A stretch of 64,000 bases of DNA from assembly GCA_002269645.1 (NCBI GenBank), contig NIVC01000514.1, positions 493,453 through 557,452 of the forward strand, read 5' to 3'. Shown piece by piece: positions 1 through 36,857 of the stretch. This DNA comes from Macrostomum lignano. Its lineage: Eukaryota. Each line of letters opens with the position of its first letter. Position 1 is the first letter of the stretch. The notes below the pieces were generated by a model, which was given only the letters and a program-made list of their open reading frames with translations, was not told the DNA's origin and made no database searches. The translations under genes and the position numbers were made by a program.

Positions 1-3000
1 TTTTTAAACTTTGTTCAATTCCAGCTTTGTACTTGAGGATAATATCAATCCTAGTAGTACATTGGCCGAATAGTGCACTTTTATCAGACTTTTCATCCAA
101 TTTGAATGCTTGATCGGATGTAACCTCTTGATCAGCCTGATCCACTTGATCTGTTTGATCGGATGTAACCTCTTGATCAGCCTGATCCACTTGATCTGTT
201 TGATCGGATGTAACCTTTTGATCAGCCTGATCCACTTGATCTGTTTGATCGGATGTAACCTTTTGATCAGCCTGATCCACTTGATCTGTTTGATCGGATG
301 TAACCTTTTGATCAGCCTGATCCACTTGATCTGTTTGATCGGATGTAACCTCTTGATCAGCCTGATCCACTTGATCAGCTTGATCCACTTGATCTGTTTC
401 ATCCGCTTTTAATCTTGCTCCAGAAAAAAACTGAGTCCACAAGGCGTGGGCTAGCCACGTTTCCTTAATTCTTGTTTTGGCTTCCTGCAAGTCGTTTTTG
501 ATATCTTCAATGCCGCTATCACCTTTCATTATCTTCGCATACGCTCTATTGTAGTAGGCTATTGAAGACCAGGCGCAATTCATTGCAATAGCTGTAGTAT
601 ATAAATCAATTGCTTTTTGGAAATCCTCTTGTCGTAAACATTTGTCCGCAAGTTTTAGAGTTTGAAACGGACTCATTAAACAATCTGATTCAATATTTTT
701 TGTGGCGTCCTTGAAAGTTTCCTTGACTTCTCTAATATACTTGTCTGTGTTTGGTTTGCTAAAGTCGGCAGTGTGGCACAAAATTGTCTTTAGATGCATT
801 CCCCAGATTTCTTTCAGACAGTTTAATTTGAGCTTTAGGTCTATATCATCCTTATTTGCCTGGCGGTACTTTGTTAATGAGCGACTGAAGCGACGAAACA
901 GACTTTCCTTGAATTCTACTTCAGGCATAGAAAATTCCGTATGATTTCGCAGCTCTTGTAAACTGGCCTCCCGCCTCACTTGCTTCATCTCCTCTACCGA
1001 GTCGCAGTCAGCAAAGCAAGCGCTAAGACCCTCCTGGCTTAGAATTAATGTCGCAGAACCCCGCTGACCCTTGCGTCCACTGCGACCACACACTTGCTCC
1101 TCGACTCGCTGATTCAAGGGGAGAAATGTGACAAGTACGTGCAGACCTCCAGCTGCCTCTGCTTCATCGTTTACTTTCACGTCCGTGCCTCTGCCTGCCA
1201 AATTCGTGGCCACAATCACATCTCCTGGACCAACAATCAGCTCAGACTTTGTATCTTCGTTCCTGATGTACCTTTTAGGCGTAACCCCGTGACATCGGCG
1301 AGTTACCTCGTTGAGAACGAGATCAGCACTGTTTATGTCCTCACAAACAATCAGAGTTGGCCGGTGCCTTTCCTTCTTTACTAGCTGGCAAAGCTTTGAG
1401 ATGCACTCAGATTTGGTTTCGGTGACAATGCCCGGGTTCTCTACTAGCCGGCGTTCCCTGAACGGAGGAATATAGTTTAGCTGTACTTTGTAGGTTTTGC
1501 GCATGAACTCCTTCTCGTGCTCCTCCCCGAGAGTCCCAGAAACGCCGAACACCGCGGTGCCATACCGACGGAAAAAATATAAATTTGATAAAAAGTTTGT
1601 TTCTAAACCAAGAGGTCTCATTTGTAGACGATGCTTCAGCTGCAGGAACTGCTGCAGTCCATCGCTCCATCTCATGTTTTCTTGAACCACACCTGTGTGC
1701 TTGAAGTCCACAGGCACAGCATCTCCGTCCTGCAAGAGGTAGTCGCGTCCGGGCTGCAGAACTCCTGCGGTGAGAGCACTGTTGATCCAGACGTCAAGCA
1801 TATCGTCGATGAACCCTTTCAGGTGTTTTGGCATCGGCAGTTGCTTTTCCTTGCTAGTTACTTCCGTTTTAGAGTCGTCAGTTGAATCCTTTAAGGATGT
1901 GCTGTAATTAATTTGGGATTGAACATCCTCTCTTTTTTTCGAAATGAAGTCCTCAATATTGGCGAACAGCAATCTGCAGACACCGCCTTGGTTCACGAGA
2001 AGATGCGTGGAACAGTCTTCTGAATGCTCCAGTGGTTCTATTTCCGCATTTCTGTAGATGTAGATGTTGCACCTGGGAAACTGGAGCAAGGAATCTGCGG
2101 CAGTGGTTAGAATTTCTCTTACTCTGCCGATATCGAATTGAGATAAATCAACGGGATCTACAGTCTGATTCAAGAAGTCCTTCTTTTCCTCTGAGTTTAT
2201 CAGTTCTTTCTGAAGTAGCGTTTCAATTAACTCATTGAATTCCTCATCGGACGTTAGTTCTTTAAGGAAGTAGAGAAATGTCATTGCCTGCTCTGCAACC
2301 ATTTCACCTCCATGCACGGTGTTTAGAACCTGACAACCGAATGTGGCTCTGAAAATCGTCGGAAAAACTGGGTCCAGCATTTTCATGTCTCCCACATCCT
2401 GAGAAAGATACGTTAGCTGCACTCCCTGGTCGAGCAGCAGTGAATCGACCTCATCCACAATAACTGCGTCGAAGCTTCTTGTGCCACGAATTTCTTTAAA
2501 CTGGAACTCGTGCCGCAAAACGTCACCTGCAAATGAAGACACCGTGCCATACACTATTTTGGACTCATAACACTCTTTTGGTTTTTTATGATTAATGTTG
2601 CAGCTAACGGTAACTTTGCATTCTTGATAAAAATCGTGCCATTCTTGGCAGTCTCTTTCAGCCAGAACTTCAGAGGGTGCAACGACGTCAACTGACGTCC
2701 TCCCGAGAAGCAGAAGTCCGACGGCGGTCATTGCCACAATGCACGATTTTCCTTCGCCAGTCAGAATCTGCAAAATTTGTCCAAATTTCTTGCTAGCAGA
2801 GCTTTTGAGCAAGGCAGCAGCACTGAGAAGTTGAGTGTTCCGCGGAAGATATCCTTTACATTTTCTCACTGCCTTTGACAGATCAATCAAAATTTTGTGC
2901 AATGGTGGTTCCTTTCCACGCTCCCATAGTTTGATTTTGCTAAGCTTTTCGGTGATAGTTTTTTTTGCTTTGCTAAATCCGGACATATCAAAATATTTCG

Positions 3001-5203
3001 CGGTTTTACTGACGACATCTTCAAGCTCGGAAAGCTGATCGTCTTCAAATCCTCCTGATTCCTTAAGTTCAGCTAGAAGCTCGCCGAGAGTCCTCTGCGC
3101 TGCCTGATCCTTTTCAAGTCGCTCAATGGTGGCCTTTGAAATAGTCTCGCTGGAATCCAGAAGACCTTTCAAATCGCAGCGGCTCAAAATCATCATCTGG
3201 ACGACCTGTCTTACTTGATCAGGTGTCGAGTCACTAGAGTGAATGAGCTCCATTAGCTTGAGCGTGCTTGCCGAATCCCAGTGATGCATTGACAGAATGA
3301 GCTCAACCACACATTCGGTGTCCGATTTGTTATCAAGATAGTCGGCGATGCCAGCAGTTTTCAGCATTGCTATCAAGACGGATCGGAGTCTCTTCAAGTC
3401 GGTGTCTGTATTCTGGGTAGGCCAGAGTCGAGTAATATCTTCAGCCACTAAGAGTAGCTTGAGCAGAATTTTTATGACAGGAGTTGTCTCATTCTGCTTT
3501 TTTGCCATTAGCAGCTTATCCAGATGCTCTATGGCACAATTTGTGTCACGGAACTGACGATAAAGTTCATCCATCTCATCTTCGTTCGAAAGGTCTTCAG
3601 CGGGTTCCTCTTTAAATAAAAGCAAAACCAGCAAGCCATAATACACCATGTCGATTTCTGTTTTCGGAAAGCAAAATTCTATGAGAACCTTGTTTGCAGC
3701 GTCTACCACTTGGCCAGCCGACTCTTCATCTAGCAGCTTCAGAAGCGACAAGTGTGTCGCCATTTGATTCTCTTTATTGGGCTGAGGAATTCGTGACTTC
3801 CAATGACTATAAAAATGATTCAGGAATTGCGATCTTGAAACGGCTTCTACAGTTCTCAAAGCATTTTGACCACTCGCATTCTGACTTGCGTCTTTGAGAC
3901 GGGTAAAAACATCTCCGACAGCATTTTCAATGCTTTTATCTATTTGGCTCCTGATATCTGCAACAGTAGCATCGGAAACTCCAAGGCTTGCATAGTCTTT
4001 TGCACACTTGCCGCGCACATGCTGTATCGAGACTCTCAAGCCTTTGAACAATCTCTGCATTTCTTTTGCTCTATGGTTTTCCCTTGCTGTTGCCACCTGC
4101 CGTCCAAATTTCTCTGTTTTCTGTAGGTTCTCAGACGCTTGCTGATTTCTCCTTATCTTTGCTCGCTGCTCTTCAATTCTTCTTGAGATATCGGCCTCTC
4201 TTTCAGCTAGTTCAGCTTCGAACTCTCTTCTTCCTTTTTCAAGCTCCTCCTGCTGCGACTGCAGTCTCTTCTTCATCTCCAAGCTATGCTCTTCCATCTC
4301 AATCTGCTTCTTCTGCATCTCGCTCTGAAAGCGATCTTTCCTTTCTTTAAACTGCGCTTGCAGACGAGCTCTGTGTTGATCAGCTTCCGCATTGAGGCTG
4401 TTAAACCTTGCACTTGTCTCTGACGTAATCCGCTCCTTTTGGTGCCGAAAGCTTTCCAGTCTTTCCATTCGAATCTTTTCCACCTCTTTTTGTTCCTCCA
4501 GCAAATCCTGTTGGCCTTTATATTTCCAGTCTGTCTTTTGCTTCTGCAGTTGAGAGAAAAGCTTTTCTCGATTCTTATTCTGCTGGGAAGAACTCTCAGC
4601 CTGCCTGCCTAACCTGTCTTTTTGCATCTCCTGGCACCTTCTTTTGAACTCATCTTCTCTGCGGCTGAATGCGTTTAATGCCCTGCTTCTTTCTGAATTC
4701 CACGCCTCCCATTTTTTTCTGTTTTCTTCTCGGATCCTATCCTGCTGATCCTTCTGCTCTTTTATCTTTCTTTCGTCAAAGAGTGTCCGTTCTCTGTCAC
4801 TCTGCTTCAGCTGCTCTCGAGCTGTTTGCATTCTTTGCTCCCGCTCTCTGCGTTTCCTGTCAGCAAACATAGACTTCGTTTCATATTTATATTCTGCCTC
4901 CTGTTTGCCGTCATAGCTCAGATGAATAAATCCCTCTGCCGGTGAATCCAGCTTCCATTCTTTGTTTCTGATCCCATTGCACCAAGACTGCATGTTTGGG
5001 TTTTGAATGGTCTCGTGTTTACCGTGCATTCCGTGTTTGAAGTAAATGTTAACCGGTAGACCTGCGTAGTCATAATGAACTGATCTACCAGATGGCAAAT
5101 TGATGAGCTCGGATCCAGCACCAACTCCTATCACCTTGTACTTCGCTGCCACGCTCCAGTCCTCTTCTGTGTCGTTACAGAGCTTGCTCCCGGTGTTGCC
5201 CAT
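1..5203 (-). CDS. Large SecA-DEAD-like ATPase-domain protein (eukaryotic SecA-like family), >1734 aa, C-terminus beyond the left edge of the window
   Basis: ATG at 5203 (MGNTGSKLCNDTEEDW...). The same frame (codon first base = 1 mod 3) was confirmed by hand at about 4880-4620, 4138-3600, 2455, 1495, 1369, 1213, 478-360 and position 4; not every codon was checked. SecA motifs in order: YLPRNTQLL (~2850), QILTGEGKS (Walker A, ~2765), IVYGT, FDAVIVDEVDSLLLD (~2455), FFRRY..GVSGT, YKVQLNYIPP, RPTLIVCE, VATNLAGRGTD (~1210), GGLHV, EEQVCGRSGRKG (~1080). E/K/R/Q-rich coiled coil at about 4850-4050. The ORF track omits it because no stop falls inside the window. Confidence 0.9.
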   Translation of the reverse strand, partial: MGNTGSKLCNDTEEDWSVAAKYKVIGVGAGSELINLPSGRSVHYDYAGLPVNIYFKHGMHGKHETIQNPNMQSWCNGIRNKEWKLDSPAEGFIHLSYDGKQEAEYKYETKSMFADRKRREREQRMQTAREQLKQSDRERTLFDERKIKEQKDQQDRIREENRKKWEAWNSERSRALNAFSRREDEFKRRCQEMQKDRLGRQAESSSQQNKNREKLFSQLQKQKTDWKYKGQQDLLEEQKEVEKIRMERLESFRHQKERITSETSARFNSLNAEADQHRARLQAQFKERKDRFQSEMQKKQIEMEEHSLEMKKRLQSQQEELEKGRREFEAELAEREADISRRIEEQRAKIRRNQQASENLQKTEKFGRQVATARENHRAKEMQRLFKGLRVSIQHVRGKCAKDYASLGVSDATVADIRSQIDKSIENAVGDVFTRLKDASQNASGQNALRTVEAVSRSQFLNHFYSHWKSRIPQPNKENQMATHLSLLKLLDEESAGQVVDAANKVLIEFCFPKTEIDMVYYGLLVLLLFKEEPAEDLSNEDEMDELYRQFRDTNCAIEHLDKLLMAKKQNETTPVIKILLKLLLVAEDITRLWPTQNTDTDLKRLRSVLIAMLKTAGIADYLDNKSDTECVVELILSMHHWDSASTLKLMELIHSSDSTPDQVRQVVQMMILSRCDLKGLLDSSETISKATIERLEKDQAAQRTLGELLAELKESGGFEDDQLSELEDVVSKTAKYFDMSGFSKAKKTITEKLSKIKLWERGKEPPLHKILIDLSKAVRKCKGYLPRNTQLLSAAALLKSSASKKFGQILQILTGEGKSCIVAMTAVGLLLLGRTSVDVVAPSEVLAERDCQEWHDFYQECKVTVSCNINHKKPKECYESKIVYGTVSSFAGDVLRHEFQFKEIRGTRSFDAVIVDEVDSLLLDQGVQLTYLSQDVGDMKMLDPVFPTIFRATFGCQVLNTVHGGEMVAEQAMTFLYFLKELTSDEEFNELIETLLQKELINSEEKKDFLNQTVDPVDLSQFDIGRVREILTTAADSLLQFPRCNIYIYRNAEIEPLEHSEDCSTHLLVNQGGVCRLLFANIEDFISKKREDVQSQINYSTSLKDSTDDSKTEVTSKEKQLPMPKHLKGFIDDMLDVWINSALTAGVLQPGRDYLLQDGDAVPVDFKHTGVVQENMRWSDGLQQFLQLKHRLQMRPLGLETNFLSNLYFFRRYGTAVFGVSGTLGEEHEKEFMRKTYKVQLNYIPPFRERRLVENPGIVTETKSECISKLCQLVKKERHRPTLIVCEDINSADLVLNEVTRRCHGVTPKRYIRNEDTKSELIVGPGDVIVATNLAGRGTDVKVNDEAEAAGGLHVLVTFLPLNQRVEEQVCGRSGRKGQRGSATLILSQEGLSACFADCDSVEEMKQVRREASLQELRNHTEFSMPEVEFKESLFRRFSRSLTKYRQANKDDIDLKLKLNCLKEIWGMHLKTILCHTADFSKPNTDKYIREVKETFKDATKNIESDCLMSPFQTLKLADKCLRQEDFQKAIDLYTTAIAMNCAWSSIAYYNRAYAKIMKGDSGIEDIKNDLQEAKTRIKETWLAHALWTQFFSGARLKADETDQVDQADQVDQADQEVTSDQTDQVDQADQKVTSDQTDQVDQADQKVTSDQTDQVDQADQKVTSDQTDQVDQADQEVTSDQTDQVDQADQEVTSDQAFKLDEKSDKSALFGQCTTRIDIILKYKAGIEQSLK
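110..400 (-). repeat. In-frame coding tandem repeat, 45 bp / 15 aa unit (DQTDQVDQADQEVTS or ...KVTS), about 6 copies, inside the SecA-like CDS
   Basis: Unit gatcggatgtaacctcttgatcagcctgatccacttgatctgttt repeats directly and stays open in the SecA-like frame. Confidence 0.9.
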
Positions 5204-6288
5204 GCTGCAAAGTTAATGCAGTTGTTATTAAATTGAAGCAAATCAAAAAACGCACGGACACTAAAAGCAGCAAAAAATGGAGAATGTATGTTCCACGTTC
5301 TACGAGCTCGTACCTCGTTAACGAGAAGTTTGCTTCCACACCCTGATTGCTGCCCACATTCGCTACTGGAGAAGGGTAAGCCATCGATAGCAGGCGCTTT
5401 GGTCTGGAGCTGACCTTCGAGCTTCATTCTAGAGCCAGTTCATTCTAGCTTACGAAAATCCTTATTTTATCCTTTTTATCCAATGGGACCCCAAGGAAGG
5501 GACTTTGGTGGGAAGTCTCGACATTAACTGGTTTAATTCTAGTCAACTGGTCTGACAAGTTATCAATTGCAGTAGTTTGTTCAAATCCCCGCATTGAAAC
5601 TTAATGTATCAAAAAATGTAGTTTTTTTGTAAGCAATAAAATCACAGTGACCAACAGCCTATGAGCTATGAGTATGCAGTCAGATTCCATATTGGAGCTT
5701 CAGTTATAAATTCAAATCCCATGCGAGTACATTATATGCTTGCACAAAGCAATAACGTTTCTTTCTTACCTTTGGGCATGTGACGTGTATAGCAACCAGG
5801 ATCAAGATTTTTAAGCAGTGATTAATCGAGAATTTTTTTATTATGTTTTATATTTATAAATGTCTTACTTACCAGTCCACTTTATCTCATATTTGCGATG
5901 GTGCAAGAATTAGTACCTTGTAGAAGGTAACTGCAAGAAACAAACAGCATGGGTTAGAAATTTAGCGCACTGTAAGTACGCAATTATAGTGTAATACACT
6001 GCAAAATGTACGCAGAAATGGCCCGCCTCCTCGGGTCCATGAGCACACAAAACTGAACTTCTCTTTCTGTTGAACAGTACGAGCGTAGACCGACTGCAGG
6101 TACAGATGAAACTTTCTCACCTTTTAAGAAAGGATAATTTTTTCGTATAGTGAATTTGCATGCACTCTGCCTCTTAGCTGAGCCACAATAAGTGAAGTTG
6201 TCTAGATTCCTAGAACCTCCTTCCCTAACAGGTACATGAATCTACTGTCAGATAAGATTTTCTGACATATTTTTCTCAAAAACTTCAA

Positions 6289-9200
6289 ATGAACGACGAC
6301 GGGCACGACTTAAAGCACCATTTTCGCTTTCTAGTCAAAAACAAAAGATCCACAAGGCAGAATGGAAGCCTGGAAAGTGTGCTCGTCTTTGATTTGGAAG
6401 GACCTCCTTCTTTTTCGTCCAGTAGATGGACAGAAGCGAGCAAGAAGCAAAAGACAAACCACGCGGAAGTCGAAAAATGGTTTGTCAAGTTTAGGAGGAG
6501 CCATGAGGAGGTAAGACCACTTTTGAAGAGATTTTGATTTACATCATTTTCAAATTCAAGGTGCCGCCTGTACTTTAGGTCAAAAGCTCACTGTAATCAG
6601 CAAGCTCACTAGATGCAGAACAATAATTGTAGTCAATTATTTTTCTGAAATCTATAGCACACATACATACAGACAACTCATTTTTTGTATATAGGATCCT
6701 GTGATGCCAGTCGGCTTATTCATACTCGTACCTTTCCTTAAAGCTTGAGGCTAGAGGCTAGCTAGCCTAGATGCATAAGGCTTGTATTGTACGAGCGTAC
6801 TTTACTCTCTCGTGTTGCACTGGCGCATTTGGTGGTGGTTGGCGTTGCAAATCGTCCTGAACAAGTGCAAGCAGTGTAAAGCAGGCTCCTAGCTGCAGGC
6901 TGCAGTCCAAGGACAGCGGGGGAGGCAGGAGTCGCTCATTCCTCATCTAATTAATGAAAAAACGAATTATCTTCCATTTTTTCTCCATTAAGGTTCCAAG
7001 TGAATTTTCAAACAAAACTACTGAGGAACAGTTAGGTGCGAATCAAGTGCAATACTGTGGCTAGACATGCTTTTTGGTCTATTGTCTACACACGTCATTC
7101 CTCTCTTCCCGGGAAATAGGAGTTTATGCGCCATTTTTTAGTTCTCGGCTCACGGTGCGCCGTTGCAAATGAAGAGTCCTTAGCTATCCATACTAGAAAT
7201 TATCTGTACCAAGAATATGTTTTCGTTCCCTGCCATCTTCCACCTTCACCAAAATAGACATGAGCTCGCGCTAGATGGCTTGAGTAACCAAATACTGAGA
7301 TGCGATTCTATCATTCTCAAACCGCTGTGAGCGGACAATAAGTTCGGGCTTGGAGGTAAGTTTGGGACTACTTCGAACAGTGAGCAGTTTTCTCTTTGCT
7401 TGCGATTCTCCTGATCGCCCTGTGTGCTGCAATTCCGCCGAGCGTTTCAACTTGCATTGTTTTATGGAACGGGCGCTCTATAGCTCCCAGTTTATGATAA
7501 GATGACGCGGTTGTGTTCAATCAAAATTCGTCAATGCAGACCTCGAGTTCTTTGTGTTTTTTTACTCCCCATACCCACTCGCTCCAGATCAGATCTACAC
7601 GTGGGATGTAGAAGAAGGGTGTTTGATTTGCGTTTTAGTTTGTAAACAGTGAGTTCGTGCTGCATTTAACCGTCTCTCTATACCCTTGTAGATTAATGTG
7701 TAGTGCGTATGCTGTGTCATCTCAATTCAGAATCGTCCTATTTCCTTTGCTACTCCTTTCAGAGGAAGGAACAATGGAGCTGCAATGTCGAAGTAAATAA
7801 AAAAAGAAGAGAAGTGTCTTTGGCAGTATTAGGCATGACAATCTTGGATAATATCAAAATTAGTTCGACAAAGATCACGGTGGCCGACTGCAAGCAGGAA
7901 TTTAACCAATTGGTCTTGGAGTCCACAAAGGGAATTAATATCTCATCTAGATGCATGCAAGGGTCCAAAATAAAACTTCTTTCTTCAGAAGTTGTGTTGG
8001 CAGAAAGCTCAGTTGTTCAGTGCTCGCAGTTGCTATGCGAATCAACGATCCGGGAGGTGTCATCCAGCCTGATTGTGTTTGGCAGCATCTTGCCGCTTCC
8101 CTGTTCAACTGAGGAAGCTGATGGCAGCCTTTCCATTCGAGTTAATGGAAATATTGTAGTAAAAATGGATGCAAAAATCGGATATTCGGACCGGCATAAA
8201 AAGGCCAAAGAAGTAAGTTTGATCAGTACTGATGGCATAACAAATGTTGGAGTCGTATTTGCTGAACACAAGATAGAAATCTCGGCAAAGCAGATTCGCT
8301 CTCCAGTATCGAGCAAGGAGTCTGCAGCTCGTGTGTCAAAATACCTCAGTAACGCTGGCAAGCAAAGCAAGGCTGAAAGGAAAGCGAGAGACGCCGACAA
8401 GCAACTGATCGATTCGTCCACAGGTGATTCTGCAGCAATGAAAAAGCTGCTATTTTCTGGGGCTGATCCTACATTCAGAGACAAAAAAGGTGAAAGCGCC
8501 ATTGCGAAGCTCAGAAAGGCGATTGCTGATCTGGGAACTGCGCCGAATCCACCAGGTGTCGCTGAAAAGAATAAACTCAATAAGAACGCGATACTCCTGA
8601 AGTGGGAGGCAAACAGTAAGGGAAAATACCAGTCACAGAGTATCTGCTGTCTTGTTAGTGAGGATGTTGCCAACCTCAGCCAGTTTCTGGGTGCAAAAGT
8701 TCATCTTGAAATTGGTGGGGATGCGTTTGTCGAAGAAAGGTCTGTATGGAAAAGTGGGTCAATCAGCGGTTGGTGCCGCGGTAGGCTCAATGTCCAAGGA
8801 GAAGTCAAGATAGAAGAGCTGAATAAATTCGAGGTTGGAAAATGCAGAGTCCAAGCAGGGGCAGAATTGTGGTTAGTGAATGGCGGTACATTAAGAGTAG
8901 TACGTAGTCTTGAAAACATTGGATGCATATACAACAGCTTCAAGAAGCTCTCAATGGATGTTGAAAGTTTCTCACAGAGTGTAGTTGCAGCTGCTTATTC
9001 TGAGAAGGAGAACAAAGCTGAGCTTCAAATTATCACAAGGAGACCAAGTGAGTCCGTGTTTGGCAGGCTGGGTGGCTACCGAGTCACCGTCTGCGCATAT
9101 GCTCGGCTTACGCTTCAGGCTGAAGTTGAGGCCATGGAGTCTTTGGTAGGTGTCATTTGTAGTCCAGCTGGTCATATTTCGCTGCAAGGAAATATTAAAA

Positions 9201-12200
9201 TAATCGAAGGACCACTTGTTGTACATTCCTGGCTTCGAACCTGTGGCTTTGGACCTGACGTAGATTTAAACTGCAGCATAGAGTGCGCGGGCATAGTCAT
9301 TCCTGCTGCAACAGTGAACTTTGGTCCTAATAGCCAGTTGCTGTGTCCTCCACAGTGTAGTCCAGAATATTGCGCGAATAGCATCGAAATCGTGTTAAAC
9401 AAAGCTCAAACACAAAGCGGATCAGTATGGGAGTTCTTTACTCGCGAAGTGAGCATCTTCATCGGAACTAAATTCACTCACCAAGGCAGCCTGAAGCTTT
9501 GCAAGAAAGGCGAAACAGGTCTTGAGACAAGAGAAGAGCATGGAGCGTCTGTATACATAAGGGGAAACCGATTTGTTAACAAAGGAATGATAAGTGGCAT
9601 GAAGGCCTTATGCATTGATTTAGACAGTGATTGTGAGCTAGACAGAAACCTTGAAGTACATGACTCCATTTCAGTTTTGACAAGAAAGCATCTTACAATA
9701 TCGTCAAATACTAACTTGAAGTCCGCTAACGGAAGCTTGGCGATCAGTGCAAATTTCATAGCTAATTTTGGTGCTGTTCACAGCCACACGGATTTGATCA
9801 TCGAGTCCGGAGACATTGATAATTCAGCTGGGAGCATTGCATCAGACCATGGAATCGTCTTTATTGCCTGGTTAGGGCCACAGGAAAGCTGCTACCTCGA
9901 GGGCCATGTACAAGCGGGTTCGCAGCTCGTGTGCACAGCAGCAAATTCTAATATGCTGCATATCCACGCCAAATCTCACAGCCAGCCATTGCAACTGCAA
10001 ATTCCAATGAACGGCGCCAGCTTCCAATGCTTGTCAGGATCCGTGCACTTCATTCAAAAGTGTGCTCGCCTGAGCAAACTTTTCTTCATTTAAGAGCTTC
10101 CGAATTAATCGAACTGCAGCGAAGCGTCACTTGCGACACACTCCTCGTTCAGCCGGCCGCGTCTGCTTCGGAGATGAAGCTGACAGTATCGAAACTGGAG
10201 AAAATAGCGGTGGGCTGTTTGTTAATCAGCCACGTGAACGACCGGCAGAACCAAAATGCTAAAGCAATTGTAATTGAAGGCCAGCAAGGGTCAAAATTAA
10301 AATGCAACAAATTTATGGGGTCTGAAATCAGTCTTGAGCTGAAAATAGCCGCTGAAATGGATATGCCAAGCCAGATTATGGCACAGCAGCTGTTTATTTC
10401 ACAGGACTTGACCGTTCAAAGCCAGCAAGGCGTGTGCGGAGAATTTCTAGTCAGCTGCGAAACTGAACTGAAGATTAGTGGCAATGCGGAGTTCGTTGGG
10501 GCAAGCAGCTGTCTTGTGAGAGCTCGCAGACTGTTACTCTGTGATGCGGCCGTACTTCGCCTCTTGCGTCTGACACACGTGACTATTCTGGCAAAGGAAG
10601 TCGTGACTAAAGGTATTTTTTTCGCTTCTTTAAAAGATAAAGACCGTGCCGCGATAGTGATACATGCGGATGAGTTTTATTGTCATGGATTGATTCAGTT
10701 TGGAAGTGAAAGCTCGACAAATCTCATTTTGCATGTCAACGAATGCACAATAAGCGGTCGCATCGTTCACGGCAATCAGCCATCGCTGATGCTGATTGAA
10801 TTCTCCAAAAGTGCCACGGTTCTGCCGGAGAGCGAAATTGATTTAGGGAAACTTCTGCTAATTGGGGGATGCGAAGGTACATGCAATTTTAAGTCTGCAA
10901 CCCTTTCAGTGTCTGAGTTAATGGCTATAAAATCTGTGCGCCGGTTGTCCTGGGAGACCAGCAAAGTCAAGCTGAACCAGGCACGCTTCATTGTAAAAAA
11001 CGTTGAGCAGGTCGCTCTTAAAAAAACTGAAATCATCTGCCCTCAAGGTGTTGTGCTTGACGAGTCACTAGTGGGAAGCTATGAAGTGAGCACAGCTAAA
11101 GTAAAAATCTGTGCTCAAAAGTTCACCCTGGAAACTGGTTCCGAGATTCGCAACATTGATACACTTGAAATTCACGCCTGGAAATGCGCCCGTTTTGAAC
11201 TAGGCAGCAAAGTACAATTTTGCAATAACTTTTATCTAAGAAGCAGATTCATTTACTTTCAGGCGTCCGTACACGATACGGGTGGCATTGATTGTCAAGC
11301 GGAAAGTATCGTAGTGACTGGGAGGGTGGATTGCTTTAGATCGCTGTCCATTGCTGCATCTCAGCTGCTGCACAATCAGGGAACGTTGAGTGCAAAAGAT
11401 GTCAGACTCGATGCTACCGCTAAGCTGCACATGTGCTCGAGCAGCGAGGATCAGTTCTACCCAGCGATAATTTCGGCAAAAAGCTCACTGCAGCTGAATA
11501 GCTACATCATGTTGTCTATATATGCCGAACTACGCAGCCCCACAATAGCAGTCAAGAACATTGCTCACTTTGGCTTTGCTGAGCACGTGTGCACAACAGG
11601 CGAATCTAAAGTTGGGCAACAAAGCGCGAGTCGTGAAGAAGTTGAAAAATTCCTGGGTGCCAACTCTACAGTTGTCCCCAGCCAAACAGCGAGATGCAAA
11701 ATCTATTTGAATTCATGGTGCTTGAATCGGTAAAAATGTTTTTAGAAGATCACAGCGGTGTGCACAGCTCGTCTTCACTGCCACTAAATGGTTGGCAGAG
11801 ACGCTAAAACGAATCCGGACTTCTAGCCCTGAGCAAAATTCAATGGATGAATTCGTTTGTTTAGTCGCGAAGCTCACTAATGCGGTCAGAGAAGGCTCGC
11901 CTGAGCCAGAGAAGAACTAATCGCCTTCTGGGAAGAATTATGCCACAGCGACTGGCTTCCGCTAAAGCTTCAAGGATTTTCGAACGCAGCCACTGCTGTG
12001 TCTGGTGGGGCCAACTCGAATAGAAGCGGCGAAAATAATTCACGAGTGCAAATTCTGGCGTTGCGATGGGTCCATATCCGTAAAGGACGGAGTCCTCATC
12101 AAGGCTGTCCACGTGCAGCTGTGGTCCGAACAGCCAACAACTTGGCTTGTGTGCACTGCAGATGTGCACATTTTAGCGGATGAAAAATTGAGAGTTCGAT

Positions 12201-15200
12201 TCTTGACATCAAGCGAGGGCTCAGTCACTCTGAGGGGTGGGTAATCGAAGCACACGGAATCTGGTCTGCAGAGACCATGTTGATGTCGACTGATCAGAGT
12301 CTGGTGATTGACGAACTCCTTGGTGAGACTGGTGTCTGGATTTCGGCTGTGGATGCCACGGTGACTAACGCAGCTGCCTGGAAAATGCACCTTCTGTCTG
12401 AATCAGGAAGTATAGAAAACAGTATAATTACCAAAGCACTGGAGGTAAGTTGTTCAGAAGAATTTAATGCAAAGCTAATTTTTACAAAGCATGCGCACCT
12501 GCTTGCCTCTGAGAAATCCGGCATGGGAAGGATAAAGTTGGAGTCTTCTAAAATAAAAGTCTGCATTGTTTCGAGCGACTTTTGCCAGACGCTGAAGTGC
12601 TCTTTTGTCGATTGGCATTGTCTGATTACACGCGACCTGTTACTCAGATCATCGAAAGTGCATAATATTTTCGTAGCTAATGTTTGCAATGAGCTTACTA
12701 TTACTGCCGGTTGCCACCTTGAGAAATTACAATGCAGAGTACACCAGACACTGAGCATTGACCAACTCAAAGCACAAGATATATCTGTGGCTTGCTCAGA
12801 TTTCAAGGCTTCCTTTTTATCGGCGAGAACATTAGAGGTTGTTGCTACAGAAACCATTACAATAAGCGACTCCAGTATTATGGACCTGACGGCTCGCTCA
12901 GGCAACAATTTGGAGATTTCAGGCAATACGGCTAAGACAGACCTCGGAACTGCAATCTGCGTGAGCGGAAAATCTCTCGCAATAATAAATGCTTACGCTA
13001 CTGAAAAGCTGGTCGTATGTTCCAATTGCGTTAGCATTAGAGGCACCATGCTTTCGGAGCTCGAGTAATTTGTCCGGGCAAAGGTGAAATCGTCATTGAG
13101 AGCTCGATGGTCGTAATGATTTCGTGGCTCTGTGCCGGAAACTTGCCTCAAAGCAAAGCAAATTTGTTCGGTTGTTCTTCAGGGGCAAGCAGTTAAGCGT
13201 GTTCCAGACAGAGGCAAAGCAGATTTATGCAGATGCTGACGAATGCTTCCGCCTGTCAAAGTCAAGTGTCTCAGAAAATCTCATCGCTTGGTCCGAAGCT
13301 GCGCATTCATTTTTAAGTTACCTGGGCTCAATGAAACTTCGCCACTGCTCAGTGGGATCTACAGTGAGAACGTGCGAAGTGGAGGGGAACATGGAGATTC
13401 TCTGTCGCATGCTCAAAATGTCCGATTCCAGCGCAAATTCTCTCATGATCCTGTCAGGAGGAAATACCAAATTGGAGAGGCTGATGATTACGAATTCCTG
13501 TGATGCTGCCATTGTAGGCTCAACTACCTTGAAAGATTGTCAGCTGGGGCAACTAAATCTGCTGACTGATTCCTCACTGCAAGTCAGTAAACTTATCGTT
13601 AATGGCGGTGCTTGCATTGCTGCCAAAGGCGATGCAGCACTTCGACAAATCATGGTGGGAAGTCTAAATATAGACACGAGGAACTTCCGTCTGTTCGTTT
13701 CTGACCTCAATTCTGCCGGCCTGAGTCATTTGAAGTCGGGGAGATTGTGCGTGTCCGGATGCCAGTGTCTGTCGGATCTGCAGCTGACAGCTGTGTTCTC
13801 AGCCCGAGTTTCTCAGTGCTTCGCCACATGCTCTGTCGTTATTCGGGGCGCGAATGCGGGCTGCTGAGAGTAGGGCTAATGGAACTACAGGCAGAAGAGC
13901 TGACCATTTTGAATTCCCTCTTCGTGGTAGTTAGTTCCATAGAAGTTTTGGAAAATGCCGTCTTTAAAAACATTTTGGGTGATGTACGAATCAAGTCAAA
14001 CTGCAGTGTGCATAATTTACAGGTGCAGACAGAAGGCATTTTGGCAGTCAGTAACTCTGAAGTTGGTCAGATTACATCCCAGTGTCGGCGCTGCTGCATC
14101 TCCACCACGTGCGGACTCCAGAAAAACTTCTTCATTCGAGCTGCGGAAACAGAGCCCGGACCCACTGTTTTACTGGACACAATATCGAGAATCAACTTGA
14201 TAGATGCTGCCGGAAGAGAAATTCGCCTGATGGAATGCGTCTTTAACCTCGGCATCATTCGGACTCACGCACGTGTCCGATTGGAGGGCTGCATGGTCAA
14301 AGCGAATGTCGATATTCAGAGCCCCATCGTGAGCGTGTCCGACACAAGTTCTGATAAAATCCGAATTAGTGACTCAGAATTCTGTGAATTCAAGGAGGTA
14401 AAACACGCGCAGATCTGGACGAAGACTTGGGAACTGAAGCTTTTGGACTGCTGTCTTCAGGAATTGCAAGCGGAAGTCACTGGTACGGCACGAGTTACTG
14501 GTTGCGCGTTCATCGAGAACCTCCTGCTCAAAGCCATCAAGGTGGAAATACGCGGTGTAATGGTTCAAAATCGCTTGCAAGTACAAGCGAGGAGGCTTCA
14601 GCTGGATGGCAGAGATCCAGACAAGAAGAATGAAGGATACTCTAAAGAGCTTATGGTGATCTCTGACTCGAGTACGTGCGGTGAAGCAGCATCGGTTTGT
14701 GTAAGTGATATCCGAATCGTTCGATTGCAAGTGATCAAGAAACCCAAGACCTTAAAACTTGCTCGGGTGACGGTTGAGAAAGCCGTTGTCTTGCCCGCCA
14801 ATGAGATTGAGCTAGATAATTTTGTCGCCCCGGAGCTATTATTGGACGCAGATCCTCTGAACTGTGCGATCAATTCAGGATCCATCCATGTTCTTATTGG
14901 CTCTGTGCGAAATCTGTCCGTGCTGAAATCTTCATTGAATCGAGTCCGAATTTCATGCGACACTCTGGTCCTAGCTGATGGAACAGACGTTCAGCAGGAG
15001 CTGATAGCTGAAGTAAGGGACGTGCGGATCTCAGACTCTAAATTTGGGTCAGTTTTTATTTCGCCAGAAGTCCCATACGAAAACAATTGCACAGCTATCG
15101 CAAAGATTCAAAGTGTCGTAACGGAATCTACCTTTCAAATATTAGACTTTCGGGATATTTTACTCGGCAATTATTGCATATTCAATGGCGAATCAATACT

Positions 15201-16983
15201 AAAGTGCCGTACATTCAAAGCAACGGAGTTCAGCCGATTTGACTTAGATGTGACTATTGACTGTGAGTCTTGCGAATGGAAAGATCCAGTGTTATGTGCA
15301 TCCTTGACACTACGCTGCTGCACCGGATTCATCGAGAAGGCGAAGGTGTCCAAGAGCTGCGATTTATTTGTGTCTGGCTCATTGCGAATTGCCGATTGTC
15401 AGTTCACCGAGTGTCTTCAGTCGTTCGGAAAGCAAGCAACGCTGGAACTCGTGAGCCCAAGGCTTGGCCGGTTCAAGTTGGAGAGCCATCGACTGACGCT
15501 GATGGCGCAGACGTACAGGACGGATCCTCGACATCCTCGATAAGCGCGGCCAGCAATGCGCACCTTAGTCGATGCCAGATTGGCGGAAACCTGCAAATAG
15601 CATCAAGATGCGTCAGAATCGACAGTCATACTTCAGTCAGCGAGTCGCTTCGAATAGAATGCTCTGACGGCCTGCACTTGGAGGACACGACTGTGGGCTC
15701 ACAACTGACAGCCTGTGCCAAAGGCCAAATCTCAGTGAACTCCGGAGTCACAGCTAAAAATTTTCTCATGCGCTCCGAAATCATTCCAACTTTTCAGCGT
15801 GCAAAAAGCTGCAAGTTTGAGCAACTAAAAATAGATTGTTCGAATTTGAATACAAAAAACTTGATTTGCTTTCTCAGTGAATCGAACTTACAGTGCGTAA
15901 GAGAGCTCCTCTGGCTGAGCACTAAACTCGAATTGGATATTCGTAGCACTGAACTTGCTCTGGTGTTCGGCCTAACCCTATCTGCCTCATCAATCAGCAT
16001 CAGCAACAGCCTGACGTCCATCAAGCCGATTTCTTTGATAGCAAACAATGGTACAATTGCGCTACAGGAATACACAAACAATGGTACGTTTTGCAGCGCA
16101 ACGGACAATAAGCTCTGAGATAAATTAACGCAAGCTTTCCAAAACAAAGTTGAGGCCAGAACAATTGTAAGCTCGAGCTCTTGAGTAACTGCAGCATTGA
16201 GTACGAATGGAGCTCAGGTATTCTCGAGTACCGAAAGAACTAGGGCCCTTTGCGAGCCCCAACAACAGTCAGCTGCAATCGATTTCAACTCTGATGCAGC
16301 CACAGCCTGCGAACGAACGGGAGCACCAAAGCCTCCGATCCGGATTGGCAGAAGTTCGATAAAGAATGCCGCTCGGCCGAGGCAGAAATCCGGGGGGCAA
16401 TGGACACAGTGCCCACTCAGCTTAACTGCGACTTTATTTTACCGAGTATTGACAAATCACGACGGGAGTTTGAGAAGTTAATGAAGACAGCAGAGGCTGA
16501 GTTTAACCTCGAGTTCCAAGCATCTGATGATGTCTCGGATAGAAGCCGGAGCTGGCGAGACTTCAGGAATGTCTGCTCAGAATGCGCAGTTCCAGAAGAT
16601 CCAGAAGATTCAGAAGATTGCTTTCAGAAAGCCAGAGAAGCACAGCGGTCTTTTCTGAGCAGCTGCACGAGCATTCCTGCGAGTACCTCGGCCATTTGGA
16701 GAAACTGCCCAGCCATCTGCCGCAGGAGCTGGAGAGCTACATGAGCCGCACTCAGCCACTGGCGCGTCGGTCCGAGCTTCGCGTGACCATCGGGCCCTCC
16801 GGAGTGACCAGCATCGAGGGCGTCATCGCACGGGCCACCTTCTCCAGCGCTGACGTCATGTTGGGCCCCGCCTTTCTGGTGCCGATTTCCCGAGATCCGG
16901 AGGAGCTCTCTGCCAGGAGATTCGACACGAGCAAGCCAGATTTCTTCAAAAACTATTACCAAAGTGACAGCGCTTCAGCTTAA
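6289..16983 (+). pseudogene. Giant (~3,000+ aa reconstructed) beta-helix / filamentous-haemagglutinin-like protein gene broken by many frameshifts (pseudogene or assembly errors)
   Basis: Chain of overlapping same-strand ORFs: 7703-10093, 10027-11733, 11726-11920, 12005-12244, 12277-13068, 13124-13867, 13747-15543, 15270-16118, 16400-16744, 16582-16983. All but the last two share alternating hydrophobic/polar beta-strand periodicity and FHA-like turns (FVNKGMISG, FIANFGAVHS, DIDNSAGSIASD, LLHNQGTLSAKDVRL). Putative first coding exon 6289-6510 (GAG|gtaaga) joins in phase 0 to the acceptor ctcctttcag|7763. The family assignment is pattern recognition only. Confidence 0.6.
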
Positions 16984-19078
16984 CGGCACACTAACGAATT
17001 TCAGTAAGTGCTTGATTATTTTGTGTCGGGGTGCATCTGCACTGCCTAGCCATCTCGGGCTTGCAGTCAGTGCACCAGTCACTGCACTTTTATCCCTTCA
17101 GTTGTTTAGACAGTTGTGTACGCGCCACCCACCCACTGCCTGTCTGGGCCAGCCTGCTTTGGCTGGCTGCGCCCTCTGCGCGCCCTCCCCTCGCTTGCCC
17201 CGCGATTGGCTGGCGGCCCAGCCGATCAATTAGATTGCTATTTTTCTCCAATCACGACCGTCGCGTTCTGCAAGTTGTGAATTTTGTAATTTTGGCTAGC
17301 TGGGCCTGGCGTAGCAATACCCTGGGACTTAACCAGCTAGTGCAAATATATATATATATATATTGGCGTGTGCGGCGGTATGGGAGACCACCCTCCGTGC
17401 CGATCTAGACTCTGCATACTATCGCCAGTAACTGAGCAAAAAATCAGTATGTACTCAAAAGCATTCACTGTCCAAATTGGAGAGTCCGCCCCTACCGCCG
17501 CCACAGTCACTGCTGTGTCAAGTCAAAGAGTGAGTCGCGTCTCTTATTTATTTGCGGGTTTGGCTGGGTTCGAATTGCGCCATAGGGACGGCTGACAAAG
17601 TCTCGTGACGCGATTCCACGCTTGGAGTCCGAAGTCAGTTCGGCCAGTTGACTAACGCCATCTTCTGTGCTCGTTTGCTGAATTAGTTCAGGTTACGATC
17701 CGGCCTTTCACAACAATTATATTCAGTTTGACTTCTGTTTTATTCAAGGACATGCGGCTCCACAAAATTACAGCCATTTAAAAGTTTCCTCTAAGTCCGA
17801 TTTTAAATACTTTACGCACTACCCCCTTTGGTTCATTGATACCCTTTGATATCTTTTCAAGTGTATAAGTGTTACTTTTTTAAGTTCACTGATTGTCTTA
17901 GAAATTTTAAATGTTCAATTTTCAACTTATTAACAATTCCATTATCAATTATTACTTACATTATGCAATTATTCATTTTTCATTTACTATTGACCAAACA
18001 ACAAGGCAGAAGTAGGCATGTAGAAGTGACAAAAACCCAATAGAAACCAGCAATATTTCGTGTGCGCAGTGCAACTGATTGAAGTAAAACAAAAATGAGC
18101 ATCATAGTTCTGAAATATTTCTCAGAAGAAAATTAATTCATCAAGTTACCTTCAGTACATGATTAGGGCACTCGTACGACAAATCTTAAAGAATTTCGGT
18201 TAGGCTTCGTTTTTTACTTGCTGCATCTCCGTCCTGTTTTTTCTGTTGCAGTTCGGTCTTTTTAGATCAAATTTCTTCTTTCACTCCGGACTCTTATTTA
18301 GATTCTCTTTCTTTCCTGGCTTCCGGTTTTTCCTTGTTCGGCCTTCATCGTTTGATATTTTTTCGGATTTGGTTCCCCATTCTGCTTTGGATCCCCTTTC
18401 TTCTTTGAATCCTCTTTCTTATTTATATCACCATTCTTCTTTGGATCCTTTTTCTTCTTTGGATCCACATTCTGCTTTGGGTCCCATTTCTGCTTTGGTT
18501 TCTCTTTCCTCTTTGGTTTCTCTTTCTTCTTTATATCACTTTTCTTCTTTGGATCCTCTTTCCTCTTTGGTTCTTCTTTCTTCTTTTGATGCTCTTTCTG
18601 CTTCTTCCGCACGTTCCACACGGGTAAAGGATCTTTTTATTGGGTAAAAAAGAAAGTTCTCGCGGTTTTTGAAGCCTTCTATGAAGTGAAGTACTTGAAG
18701 TACGAGTATATGTAATGGTACTTTAGCACTGTAGCTGAAACTTGAATTCGGGTTGCTCTACATCAGTCAATGGCCTTTTTATACCTCTGCACACGTGGCT
18801 TCCAGAAATTCTGTAGTCTTATCTTCACAAACCGTGAGAACTTTCTGTTTTACCCAATACTTATGGGAAGCCGTTTGTCCGGAACAGTCCGAGTTCTTCT
18901 CAGCGAAATCACGGAAATTCCGAGGATAGAGGCGTGAGGGGCGCCAAACCACACCTTTGGAATGGCGCCGATTCTCTCAGATATGCCAATAAATCCTTCC
19001 GCTGTAGCGTAGCAAAGACGCACAGCCGATGGCGGCTTCTTCTGGGACAGCAGCGTCGAAAACTCGTCACAGGTAGAC

Positions 19079-19268
19079 TTGACTTACTTGATTAAGCTGC
19101 AGGGCTGTCCGGGGGACACAGTGGGAAGGCGCGAACGCCCATTCCGCTAATCCTTGAACGGCCGACGCGTCGCTATGAACGAAGGGTTGGCACCGCCCAG
19201 GGAAGTCCCCCAGTGTCGCCAGCAGCTATAGTGCTCTCTGGAAAGGAAAGTTAGGGCCCGGAGGTAGC
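19079..19268 (-). mobile_element. 5'-truncated, diverged 3' fragment of the same LINE family as 19737-25627
   Basis: 19092-19250 aligns by eye to 19743-19902 (agctgcagggctgtcc...gaacggccgacgcgtcgcta...ctctctggaaagga) with several substitutions. It ends in an AAGT(C)-type tail at about 19077-19092. Confidence 0.9.
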
Positions 19269-19824
19269 CTACCGGCCTCGACGCTATGGCAGTTGTGTGT
19301 GAAGCGTGACCTCTCGATAATCATACATTGTTATATAGGAGACTTTCGTAATTCCGTGCATAAGCACTGCATTTTACAACGTTTTTAGCATAGACAACCA
19401 AGAAATCTTCAGCAGCCAATCGGTGCGAACGGGGGCTTCGCGAGGCAAAATTGCACCCCTAAATTTAAGGCAGACGAGCAATCCATGGTTTTATTCATCC
19501 ATGGCAAAACTCAGAACTATTTAATGTATCTAACTATTTAAATTACATTTAATCTAACTATTTAATGTATGTAATGTATCTGTTGCTCCTATCCATGCTG
19601 CCTCTGATGCAACCTCTCACAGTCCCGAATCTGCCGTCAGCCATCCGAGCTGAGGAAAACTTAAATAATTTACACCAGCAATTCACACTGACTATTGGTT
19701 AAATGTCCGAGTAGTCAATATCTTGACGTTGCGCTCTTGACTTAGCTGCAGGGCTGTCCCGGAGGGGACACAGCGGGAAGGCGCGGGCGCCCATTCCGCT
19801 AGTCCCTGAACGGCCGACGCGTCG

Positions 19825-22800: not shown

Positions 22801-23565
22801 GGCAGCCTTGTAGGCCGCCCAATCAGTGTTGCGGATATTGCGTCTCCAAGTGATCGGAGACTGGGTTTTAGTGTCCGCGATATTAAAGGCGATAAAGCAG
22901 TGGTCAGACAGGGAGGGCTCCTCAGACCAGACTCTCCACTCCTTGACTCTGTCAAAGAGTCTTGGGGTAACGAGTGTGGCGTCGAGGACCTCGGTCCATC
23001 TGCCATTATTAAAGGTAGGAGTGCAGCCGCGGTTGCAGAGCATGAGGTTTGTGTTAGAGATGAGGGCCAGAAGCTCCTCTCCTCTAGTGTTGGTATCTTT
23101 GCTGCCCCAGTGCTTGTGGTGCGCGTTGAGGTCGCCCCCTAAGCACAGCTCAGCGTTCTGGGACTCGCAGTACTGCGCAAGGCGCAGTAAACTCTCGGGA
23201 GCAGGGTCTCTGTCGCCTGGGATATAAACCGAGGCAACAAGACACGTACGCGGAGAGAAATGATTAGATTGGATGACGCAAAGGTCTCCATCAGAGAGAT
23301 CAGTCCTCAGCCAAGCCTGGAGATGGCTAGCAGCGAGGATAGCCGCTCTAGGGCGGCTGTTCCCCGGGCCACACACATAAAAATCAGAGTAGCCAGAGGG
23401 AATGTTGGGCAACGTACCGTTGCGCATCCAGGGTTCCTGGATCAGGATGAGGCCTGGCCTGTACAGCTCAGCAATCTTCATCAGATTTACTGACGCAGAT
23501 ACGCAATGCTGTAAATTTATTTGCAGACAGAATGTCGCTCCTTTGGCAGCGTGGAGCTTAGTCAT
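19825..23565 (-). CDS. LINE ORF2: apurinic-like endonuclease, reverse transcriptase, RNase H and C-terminal CCHC finger (1246 aa, uninterrupted)
   Basis: EN motifs QINLQH, IQEPW, GGDLNAHH, SDH. RT motifs KSPGPDG, FRPISL, QHAFR, FLDIVGAFD, GPQGGVLTP, YADD, LGVTLD. RNase H motifs YTDGSK, QNEVLAI, HSDSQAAL, WVPGH, NELADTLAK. Zinc finger CSFC...ETAEHFVSIC. Confidence 0.97.
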   Translation of the reverse strand: MTKLHAAKGATFCLQINLQHCVSASVNLMKIAELYRPGLILIQEPWMRNGTLPNIPSGYSDFYVCGPGNSRPRAAILAASHLQAWLRTDLSDGDLCVIQSNHFSPRTCLVASVYIPGDRDPAPESLLRLAQYCESQNAELCLGGDLNAHHKHWGSKDTNTRGEELLALISNTNLMLCNRGCTPTFNNGRWTEVLDATLVTPRLFDRVKEWRVWSEEPSLSDHCFIAFNIADTKTQSPITWRRNIRNTDWAAYKAALDLHLQELTDLRPIETCEDVDHMAETLTGCIIAAYEAACPARAYRGKTSAPWWNPELGKLRRKAKSLHRRAMKTGNPEDMELFRQASRNFKSEVRKAKECKWRQFCNELDQDRPTSRLVKALTMDKMSKLAMIKKDDGSLTKDPEEVLQHMLSTFFPRVPTARPEPNHSMDGATLAAGIVTEDLIARAVRTFKPFKSPGPDGIYPVLLREAAKIPSFLRLTRNLMRASIQLGYVPKSWTEARVVFIPKPGKGDYQSVKAFRPISLTSAMLKLTERLILWRLLSCELTAMPLSNNQHAFRTGRSTDSALHAIVEKIERAVLGDGYALALFLDIVGAFDNVIFEAFQRALQNRKAHATLIRWIMYMISNRTVTAQLLGQTASTRVCKGGPQGGVLTPTLWNLVMDALLSDSRPDPVFKVGYADDVTAIVAGPSPSTLRDLMQSFIRKAESWANDNGLELSEPKTVAIMFTSRLRWNIRPLQLYGRDIAFAHQTRCLGVTLDHRLNWSFHVKAKAKRASAILAQLRRALGTSWGLSPKRLWWIYTSVVRPAITYASVVWVSATQVKSHADLLNTIQGRACRLICNATRSTPFAGMGAFLNLPPLDLFIRGEAARTTRRLIDAGVKFIYMRAPAKRNLVPHSDLCLNFLNECQANRVFTDGIASTLNLRQRYSVAIDSRDNINDHWNPGELHCYTDGSKQSANTGFGVGIFLNGRVIATHAQYTGVNSSVFQNEVLAISSCTAELLATGVTGKNIIFHSDSQAALHAISGCSTNSATVLDCIKLLNVLGSANKITLKWVPGHVGIRGNELADTLAKVGASGSSLGPEPLVPIPGCVIDSRIKAWIRTQHRSTWANRTNCRQSRGAVPQPSHQLRKLLLRLSRRDIRAATMTLSGHGCFSRHQYLQGNATNATCSFCNSGDETAEHFVSICPAFTRARLTYLGPHTSITEACKPENFNQLMRYLRATRRAELSFPESTIAAGDTGGPPWAAPTLRP

Positions 23566-23829
23566 ACTGTATTAAATGCAATATCTGGCTAGAGCCCAGG
23601 GCCATCAAGGAGACTTGGACAACAGATCGTCCTCGTCCCAGGCCGCTGGGGCTTGACTGGGAGATGGGAGTTGGTCGACGTCCATGGCCTCCTCACCCCC
23701 ACCGGCCCCCCAGCAGAGTCCTCAGGCTCCGATGACAGGATGGAGGAAGCTTCCTCACCTGCATCTTTACCTTCAGACCCCACCAAGGTGGCCGAGGAGA
23801 GCTCGGATTCCGAAGACCCGGCCTCGTCC

Positions 23830-32830: not shown

Positions 32831-32972
32831 TGGAAAGTAGGCTGTGAAATTTGGTCTTCGCAGTGCATGGATACTGAGCGGCCTCTCCAGTGCTTCAATA
32901 CCGGTGCTTCATAAGGAAATCGATTTTTCGATGAGTTTTGTCGAGACGAACCACAGAGCTCGCCTCCAGGTT

Positions 32973-36857
<3,885 letters not shown>

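Follow-up and report, generated by a model that had tools for sequence, protein, structure and literature searches.

A 64,000-nucleotide stretch of the Macrostomum lignano genome (contig NIVC01000514.1, positions 493,453 to 557,452 of the forward strand; hereafter the window) carries near its start two giant genes arranged head to head: a gene for a SecA-like ATPase on the minus strand and, on the plus strand, a chain of reading frames for a protein related to haemagglutinin-like beta-helix giants (Table 1). A first-pass annotation had described them as two very large, nearly intron-free genes that might form a module. This description fits the minus-strand gene, which is one frame, but not the plus-strand gene, which changes frame at least five times and contains two in-frame TAA codons.

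The SecA-like gene and its animal relatives

The minus-strand frame is free of stops over 1737 codons (2..5212) and still open past the window start; its ATG lies at 5203-5201 (-), preceded by a stop at 5213-5215. Screening the encoded protein with Pfam returned SecA_DEAD (1.7e-25), P-loop_SecA, DEAD, and Helicase_C, and the top matches among solved structures are all bacterial SecA (E 1e-36 to 7e-36), in alignments that include Walker A, DEVD, and motifs V and VI. In the frame these motifs read GEGKS (Walker A, 2741-2764), DEVDSLLLD (2429-2455), TNLAGRGTD (motif V, 1178-1210), and GRSGRKGQRG (motif VI, 1058-1090). The identification of this gene as a SecA-type ATPase giant that starts at ATG 5203 thus stands, on the stop-free frame and on the Pfam, structure, and motif matches to SecA.

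A profile of 20 members of the SecA-like family matches SecA in the PDB at 3e-61. The match covers the two motor lobes and, in the cross-linking-domain insert, the C-terminal part; it weakens where the scaffold begins, and profile positions 1018-1070 then match consensus TPR proteins. The insert comprises ~200 residues in NBD1 and lies where SecA has its preprotein cross-linking domain. SecA residues 234-331 align with the C-terminal part of the insert, and PF01043 matches the fish relatives weakly and the window protein not at all. Pfam likewise found neither the helical scaffold/wing (PF07516) nor the zinc-binding tail (PF02810) in the window protein. NBD1 with Walker A and DEVD, and NBD2 (IRA2) with motifs V and VI, are as in canonical SecA, so the SecA motor itself is present, and the protein falls outside canonical SecA because the domains that engage the channel are missing. 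With Bacillus subtilis SecA (PDB 1M6N/3DL8) it shares both motor lobes and all catalytic motifs, and it aligns with it in the C-terminal part of the insert. It differs in an N-terminal extension of ~760 residues, made up of a small domain, a coiled coil, and a helical region, and in a TPR-like region that stands in place of the undetectable scaffold, wing, and zinc tail; its gene is a nuclear gene of an animal, outside any SecYEG context. MGxxxS/T is the consensus for N-myristoylation, and the MGNTGSK start fits it; judging from this motif, the N-terminus is probably N-myristoylated.

The closest relative is Macrostomum lignano BOX15_Mlig033771g1 (P0001; 2019 aa, 60% identity over 1659 residues), whose gene is likewise intronless and begins with the same MGNTGSK. 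It has ~300 more residues than the part of the gene within the window, including a hydrophobic glycine-rich module, and a TPR_BSK1_C match. It lacks the acidic, DQ-rich 15-residue repeat encoded by the 45-nt tandem array (Table 1), which is specific to this lineage when the window gene is compared with the animal SecA-like family. Between the two copies the ratio of nonsynonymous to synonymous divergence (dN/dS) is about 0.07-0.2 and dS is saturated, pointing to long purifying selection; by these measures the SecA-like gene appears intact and functional.

A word-indexed search with the full protein gave five matches and was dominated by the coiled coil, and the motor core was used as query instead. 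It found more than 630 homologues with E below 1e-5. Among the 120 matches listed, all that carry a species name are animal, from teleost fish (many paralogues) and the hemichordate Ptychodera flava, and many homologues bear the NCBI name "protein translocase subunit SecA-like". Finding a SecA-like gene in an animal is therefore nothing unusual, and the premise that its presence here is anomalous is unsupported. The fish and hemichordate proteins are 31-42% identical to the window protein and homologous to it in the ATPase core and helical/TPR region; the fish proteins, at ~1000-1200 aa, have neither the long coiled coil at the N-terminus nor the hydrophobic module at the C-terminus. Across the family, 70 columns of the alignment (A3) are invariant, and the post-motor helical/TPR region is common to the window protein and the fish relatives. 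A giant invertebrate subtype (P0001, P0002, L008, and L009) has the hydrophobic glycine-rich module added at the C-terminus, and by analogy the module of the window gene would lie beyond base 1.

Two of these invertebrate loci (L008, 1713-9655, and L009, 10001-17416) show the SecA-like gene as two consecutive open reading frames (ORFs), the motor first and then the TPR/hydrophobic module/C-terminal region. This layout suggests an intron or a frameshift between the ORFs. The C-terminal parts vary between L008 and L009.

SecA-like ATPase modules also occur in giant bacterial toxins and in Amoebophilus/endosymbiont effectors (Zhang et al. 2012, PMC3482391; Kaur et al. 2021, PMC8195603), and in the toxins they are predicted to aid secretion by helping to move the protein across membranes. 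The animal giants resemble these proteins in joining a motor of the SecA type to hydrophobic segments and to C-terminal domains that vary. P0003, a giant relative that matches these published cases, carries a WHH/colicin-DNase toxin domain at its C-terminus. The part of the SecA-like protein in the window differs in having no visible toxin domain, its C-terminus lying off-window. Literature searches on animal SecA-like or animal FHA-like proteins returned only bacterial work and two papers of the Aravind group; the animal SecA-like family owes its name to genome annotation, and no paper on it turned up in these searches.

Reading frames of the beta-helix gene and its giant relatives

From ~7697 to 16115 very long frames without stops succeed one another on the plus strand in changing phase, and shorter ones continue to about 17400. 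At ~5% stop codons, frames of 600-800 codons are beyond chance, and this DNA therefore is, or recently was, coding. The frame changes, at least five, fall at about 10050-10090, 11725, 12200, 13066-13100, 13780, and 15400. A profile of the beta-helix family, described below, matches these frames at 8138-10048 (profile positions 151-790, E 1.4e-42), 10255-11607 (894-1282, E 4.9e-7), 12739-13023 (1478-1568, weak), 13412-13681 (1553-1640, weak), and 15552-16067 (1604-1750, E 1.5e-4), and segment 5 (Table 1) has weak, collinear phmmer matches to the family members P0126/P0138. Homology support ends at 16067 and the frame that carries it at 16115, before the region where the family has its Fil_haemagg_2 repeats. 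A six-frame search of all 64 kb found no match to profile positions 1750-3379, and positions 1-150 were also not found in the window. The gene had been drawn as extending to 16983; the frames that would take it there have no match to Pfam or the family profile (Table 1).

An exhaustive search for GT/GC-AG introns at every frame junction left only 13065-13182 and possibly 11730-12194 as intron-like, and the latter candidate is undercut by coding-like sequence in another frame. This is the third-frame segment, whose best frame has two stops (both TAA) in 168 codons against ~9 expected, by a rough estimate P about 0.007 per frame and about 0.02 allowing for three frames.

Table 1. Positions of the two genes, their parts, and the spacer between them in the window.
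Feature	Positions	Strand	Remarks
SecA-like giant ATPase gene	2..5203	-	intronless, 1734 codons; 3' end beyond window start
45-nt tandem repeat	110..385	-	6.1 copies, 98% identity; TRF and translation
TPR-like helical region, 3' of motor	500..640	-	family profile against TPR proteins; motif positions
Second motor domain (NBD2, SecA P-loop/helicase C-terminal)	1031..1402	-	PF21090 2.6e-9, PF00271; aligned to B. subtilis SecA
SecA DEAD-like motor (NBD1)	1505..2914	-	PF07517 E 1.7e-25; solved SecA structures
N-terminus MGNTGSK	5183..5203	-	first seven residues same in M. lignano P0001
Spacer between SecA-like and beta-helix genes	5204..7696		many stops in all frames
Beta-helix segment 1	7697..10090	+	798 codons; conserved N-terminal module with ankyrin-like helical insert
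Beta-helix segment 2	9952..11730	+	593 codons, different frame; shift in overlap ~10050-10090
Third-frame segment	11726..12230	+	two in-frame TAA, 11918 and 11963
Beta-helix segment 3	12184..13065	+	294 codons without stop; weak collinear profile match
Beta-helix segment 4	13100..13864	+	possible 118-nt intron 13065-13182, else stop and frameshift
Beta-helix segment 5	13705..15540	+	612 codons; shift within overlap 13705-13864
Beta-helix segment 6	15267..16115	+	last family-supported stretch; ends near profile position 1750 of 3379
Tail frames	16295..16980	+	no match to Pfam or family profile

The family was found by an index-free HMMER (phmmer) search of 7820-10090 against 1.84 billion representatives, which gave eight matches (best 5.5e-21). 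Pfam on all plus-strand pieces returned no match, and no relatives were found by a word-indexed search with the 2601-aa concatenation of these pieces or by a scan of JGI metagenome contigs with the N-terminal piece. Two of the eight carry a species name, one from the bivalve Tegillarca granosa (KAJ8305344.1), on a 51-Mb chromosome-scale contig, and one from the octocoral Paramuricea clavata (CAB4033201.1). P0126 (3952 aa), P0128 (3040 aa), and the cluster-mate of P0128, P0140 (4193 aa), lie on megabase contigs, and an OTU-bearing protein (P0129) is also among the relatives. In intact members one ORF of 3000-4200 codons encodes the whole protein, and the surrounding eukaryotic DNA is AT-rich and poor in genes; three of the loci examined have uninterrupted ORFs of 3040-3952 codons (L002, 10001-21859; L006, 10001-21757; L003, 10001-19123). 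The window copy is 20-27% identical to the family in its N-terminal module (alignment A2), collinear with it in the middle part, and shares with it both this module and the ankyrin-like insert, but it is frameshifted, contains stops, and reaches about half the family length, whereas the intact members (L002, L003, and L006) are single ORFs.

Fil_haemagg_2 was found weakly in five of nine family members at residues ~2000-2300 (best 1.5e-5, above the Pfam cut-off for P0128); a screen of the window pieces with E up to 0.1 gave no match to it. Neither the window pieces nor the family have a Pfam match to the two-partner-secretion (TPS) domain. As to a signal peptide, hydrophobic segments are absent from P0128 and P0140 and from the first 76 residues of P0126. 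A single ankyrin-like repeat (8417-8524 (+), LLFSGADPTFRDKKGESA) lies inside the N-terminal beta-helix module and is conserved across the animal family; haemagglutinin-like proteins do not usually have such a repeat, and its presence suggests an intracellular location. A glycine-rich repeat of ~23 residues (KSGDQEIGMAGGTGKEGKHASF) forms long arrays at the C-terminal ends of P0128 and P0140. A Logan contig (L007, 185-11168) encodes an FHA-like giant with an N-terminal OTU-like protease domain, split over three consecutive ORFs of 1233, 1346, and 1063 aa.

Modeling of the residues encoded by 8099-10027 with AlphaFold, from a nine-sequence alignment, predicted regular beta strands with one helical insert (pLDDT 80.5, pTM 0.74) and a strand spacing of roughly 20 residues; a single-sequence model of 13783-15399 was useless (pLDDT 29). 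Hydrophobicity autocorrelation has a period of 2, the signature of beta strands. A Foldseek search with the model gave no significant match (best E 0.44, TM at most 0.29). The long matches, all non-significant, are without exception beta-helix or solenoid proteins (RsaA, antigen 43, PL6 lyase, HK620 tailspike, the EtpA TPS domain, and IgA1 protease), and the short matches are ankyrins. The family can thus fairly be called haemagglutinin-like, with a probable beta-helix fold, and the collinear profile match, the Fil_haemagg_2 repeats of the relatives, and the all-beta model bear out that the plus-strand gene is related to such giants. Like the FHA/CdiA two-partner-secretion exoproteins, these proteins are giant, rich in beta strands, and probably solenoid-like, and relatives of the window gene have Fil_haemagg_2; they differ in that intact relatives lack a TPS domain and a signal peptide, the family has the ankyrin-like insert, and the window copy is without Fil_haemagg_2.

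Spacer, linkage, and genomic setting

The putative plus-strand start at ATG 6289 opens an ORF of 82 codons (6289-6537) that has no match to Pfam or the beta-helix family profile and is followed by 1.16 kb of stop-rich sequence before the first long frame; a mariner-type transposase, suggested for it by a motif, was dropped because Pfam gave no match. The coding start of the beta-helix gene that homology supports is 8138, within a frame open from 7697. Because ATG 6289 is unsupported, the divergent gap is not ~1.1 kb, as first described, but about 2.5-2.9 kb, unless there is a further 5' exon.

Recurrence of the pair was assessed by tblastn of the other family in nine related loci with up to 10 kb on each side. 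Four of these are SecA-like loci (L001 of M. lignano, L004 on a TARA scaffold, and L008 and L009 from ENA assemblies) and five are beta-helix loci (L002, L003, and L006 from ENA assemblies, L005 of Tegillarca, and the Logan contig L007). The other family was found within 10 kb at none of the nine. Recurrent linkage of SecA-like and beta-helix genes, set beforehand as the test of a module, is therefore not what the relatives show. Direct sequence comparison of the two families revealed no similarity. Both occur in neighbouring sample accessions (ERZ25069865 and ERZ25069870) on contigs named in the same style; the families may thus co-occur, which says nothing on whether they are linked. Fish are rich in SecA-like genes, yet none of the eight beta-helix matches is from fish.

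The window holds further eukaryotic markers, a long interspersed nuclear element (LINE) and a protein-kinase exon, and its best SecA-like protein match is from Macrostomum lignano; the animal context claimed for the pair is thus secure. GC content is 0.43-0.48 in the SecA-like and beta-helix genes and spans 0.29 to 0.61 in the rest of the window.

The ORF of the LINE-type retrotransposon (19828-23571 (-), 1248 codons) follows closely on the beta-helix gene and falls in a block of high GC content (0.55-0.59); it is apparently intact, with endonuclease, reverse transcriptase, and RNase H domains. Upstream of it, a 468-codon ORF (23833-25236 (-)) without a Pfam match may be ORF1. An 18-nt tandem repeat array of ~13 copies (18326-18631) separates the beta-helix tail from the LINE. 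Protein-kinase fragments at 45608-46741 (-) (Pkinase 1.4e-35) and 32830-34095 (-) are probably exons of one or more kinase genes. The window is a strong GC mosaic in which blocks of 0.55-0.61 alternate with blocks of 0.38-0.43 and one of 0.29 (coordinates 20-26, 32-34, 40-42, 44-48, 52-56, and 58-60 kb). In several GC-rich blocks many frames of both strands are open, which points to low-complexity or repeat sequence. An ORF at 59974-60810 (-), open in three frames and with several weak Pfam repeat matches (Gp5_C, DUF445), is probably a low-complexity repeat and not a real domain. An Rfam search and a repeat scan of 5200-19800 returned nothing relevant.

Interpretation of the gene pair

The two neighbours are probably independent genes from two different, poorly studied animal families, placed head to head incidentally, the second of them decayed. 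The first, intronless and apparently functional, encodes a giant, probably cytoplasmic SecA-like motor protein. From its N-terminus on, this protein comprises a probably N-myristoylated domain, a long stretch of coiled coil, a helical region, the complete two-lobe SecA-type ATPase, and a TPR-like region. The ATPase carries its insert where the polypeptide clamp of SecA lies, and the off-window C-terminus, by analogy with the M. lignano relative, would bear the hydrophobic glycine-rich membrane module. Domain content and the published predictions for bacterial relatives suggest a membrane-tethered, ATP-driven motor that handles polypeptides, rather than a SecYEG-dependent export motor; both the tethering and the mode of action are inferred. 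The second gene retains the N-terminal half of a giant beta-helix protein, broken by frameshifts and stops, whose intact layout appears to be an N-terminal beta-helix with an ankyrin-like insert, haemagglutinin-type repeats, and variable C-terminal regions. The frameshifts, the stops, and the missing C-terminal half lead us to read the window copy, which is 3'-truncated, as most likely a pseudogene. Its neighbours, the SecA-like ORF (5.2 kb) and the LINE ORF (3.7 kb), contain no frameshift, and the assembly is therefore not generally error-ridden.

Several observations weigh against this interpretation. Apart from the two TAA codons, the disruptions are all frameshifts and the frames are very long, a pattern that also fits a young pseudogene or indel errors in an assembly of long reads, and the N-terminal module of the window copy keeps most conserved residues. 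As to the linkage, eight of the nine loci are from distant taxa, which leaves room for a linkage specific to the Macrostomum lineage, and the locus of M. lignano is possibly that of a paralogue and not the orthologue.

We consider it unlikely that the beta-helix gene is intact and functional, its frame changes being assembly indels or very short or non-canonical introns, with a bidirectional promoter shared by the two genes and no interaction required. The length of the frames speaks for this, as does the form of the breaks, most of which are pure frameshifts within overlaps of 140-270 nt, some beside short homopolymers. The conserved N-terminal residues are kept, plausible GT-AG introns exist at the two junctions named above (the one at 11730-12194 in an alternative reading), and the related giant on the Logan contig is likewise split. 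Against it stands that the best frame of 11726-12230 contains two in-frame TAA codons, that 9 kb of neighbouring ORFs have no frameshift, that the C-terminal half of the family and the first 150 profile positions were not found, and that the start at ATG 6289 is unsupported.

It is very improbable that the genes form a co-regulated module in which a membrane-anchored SecA-like ATPase exports or handles the beta-helix giant for secretion, adhesion, or immunity. The head-to-head orientation would suit such a module, both families have relatives in bacterial toxin systems and occur in the neighbouring accessions ERZ25069865 and ERZ25069870, and intact beta-helix members without an obvious signal peptide would need another export route. 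Pairing was, however, seen at none of the nine related loci, and fish, with their many SecA-like genes, contributed none of the eight beta-helix matches. The window protein lacks the scaffold, wing, and finger, the regions with which SecA engages a channel, and a partner that is frameshifted, carries stops, and has lost its C-terminal half argues against a working pair. The functional or co-transferred module put forward in the first-pass annotation is thus unsupported, given the missing linkage and a disrupted and truncated partner. We hold with hardly any confidence the related idea of a self-contained eukaryotic export pair, in which a membrane-tethered SecA-like motor threads haemagglutinin-like beta-helix giants that have no signal peptide across a membrane and the window preserves a remnant of an ancestral linked cassette derived from a bacterial toxin system. 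A recently co-transferred bacterial cassette, or bacterial contamination of the assembly, is the least credible. In its favour, SecA motors and haemagglutinin repeats are typically bacterial and both genes are intronless; against it, the window is eukaryotic (LINE, kinase exon), the GC content of both genes lies inside its range, the species-named closest relatives of both are all animal, with relatives on chromosome-scale contigs, the saturated dS against the M. lignano copy implies long residence, and no recognisable bacterial protein is among the eight beta-helix matches, the loci examined being gene-poor.

Since a co-functional SecA and beta-helix module in an animal is unsupported, no new secretion pathway is opened. 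SecA-like motors are a large, conserved animal family, multigene in fish and with giant coiled-coil/membrane forms in invertebrates. The beta-helix proteins are rare, intronless animal giants (3000-4200 residues) that combine an ankyrin-bearing beta-helix with bacterial-type haemagglutinin repeats and occur in a bivalve, an octocoral, and a flatworm-type genome. Both families appear to have been acquired long ago from the toxin or secretion machinery of bacteria, and both would merit study for a part in immunity of invertebrates and fish or in conflict between cells.

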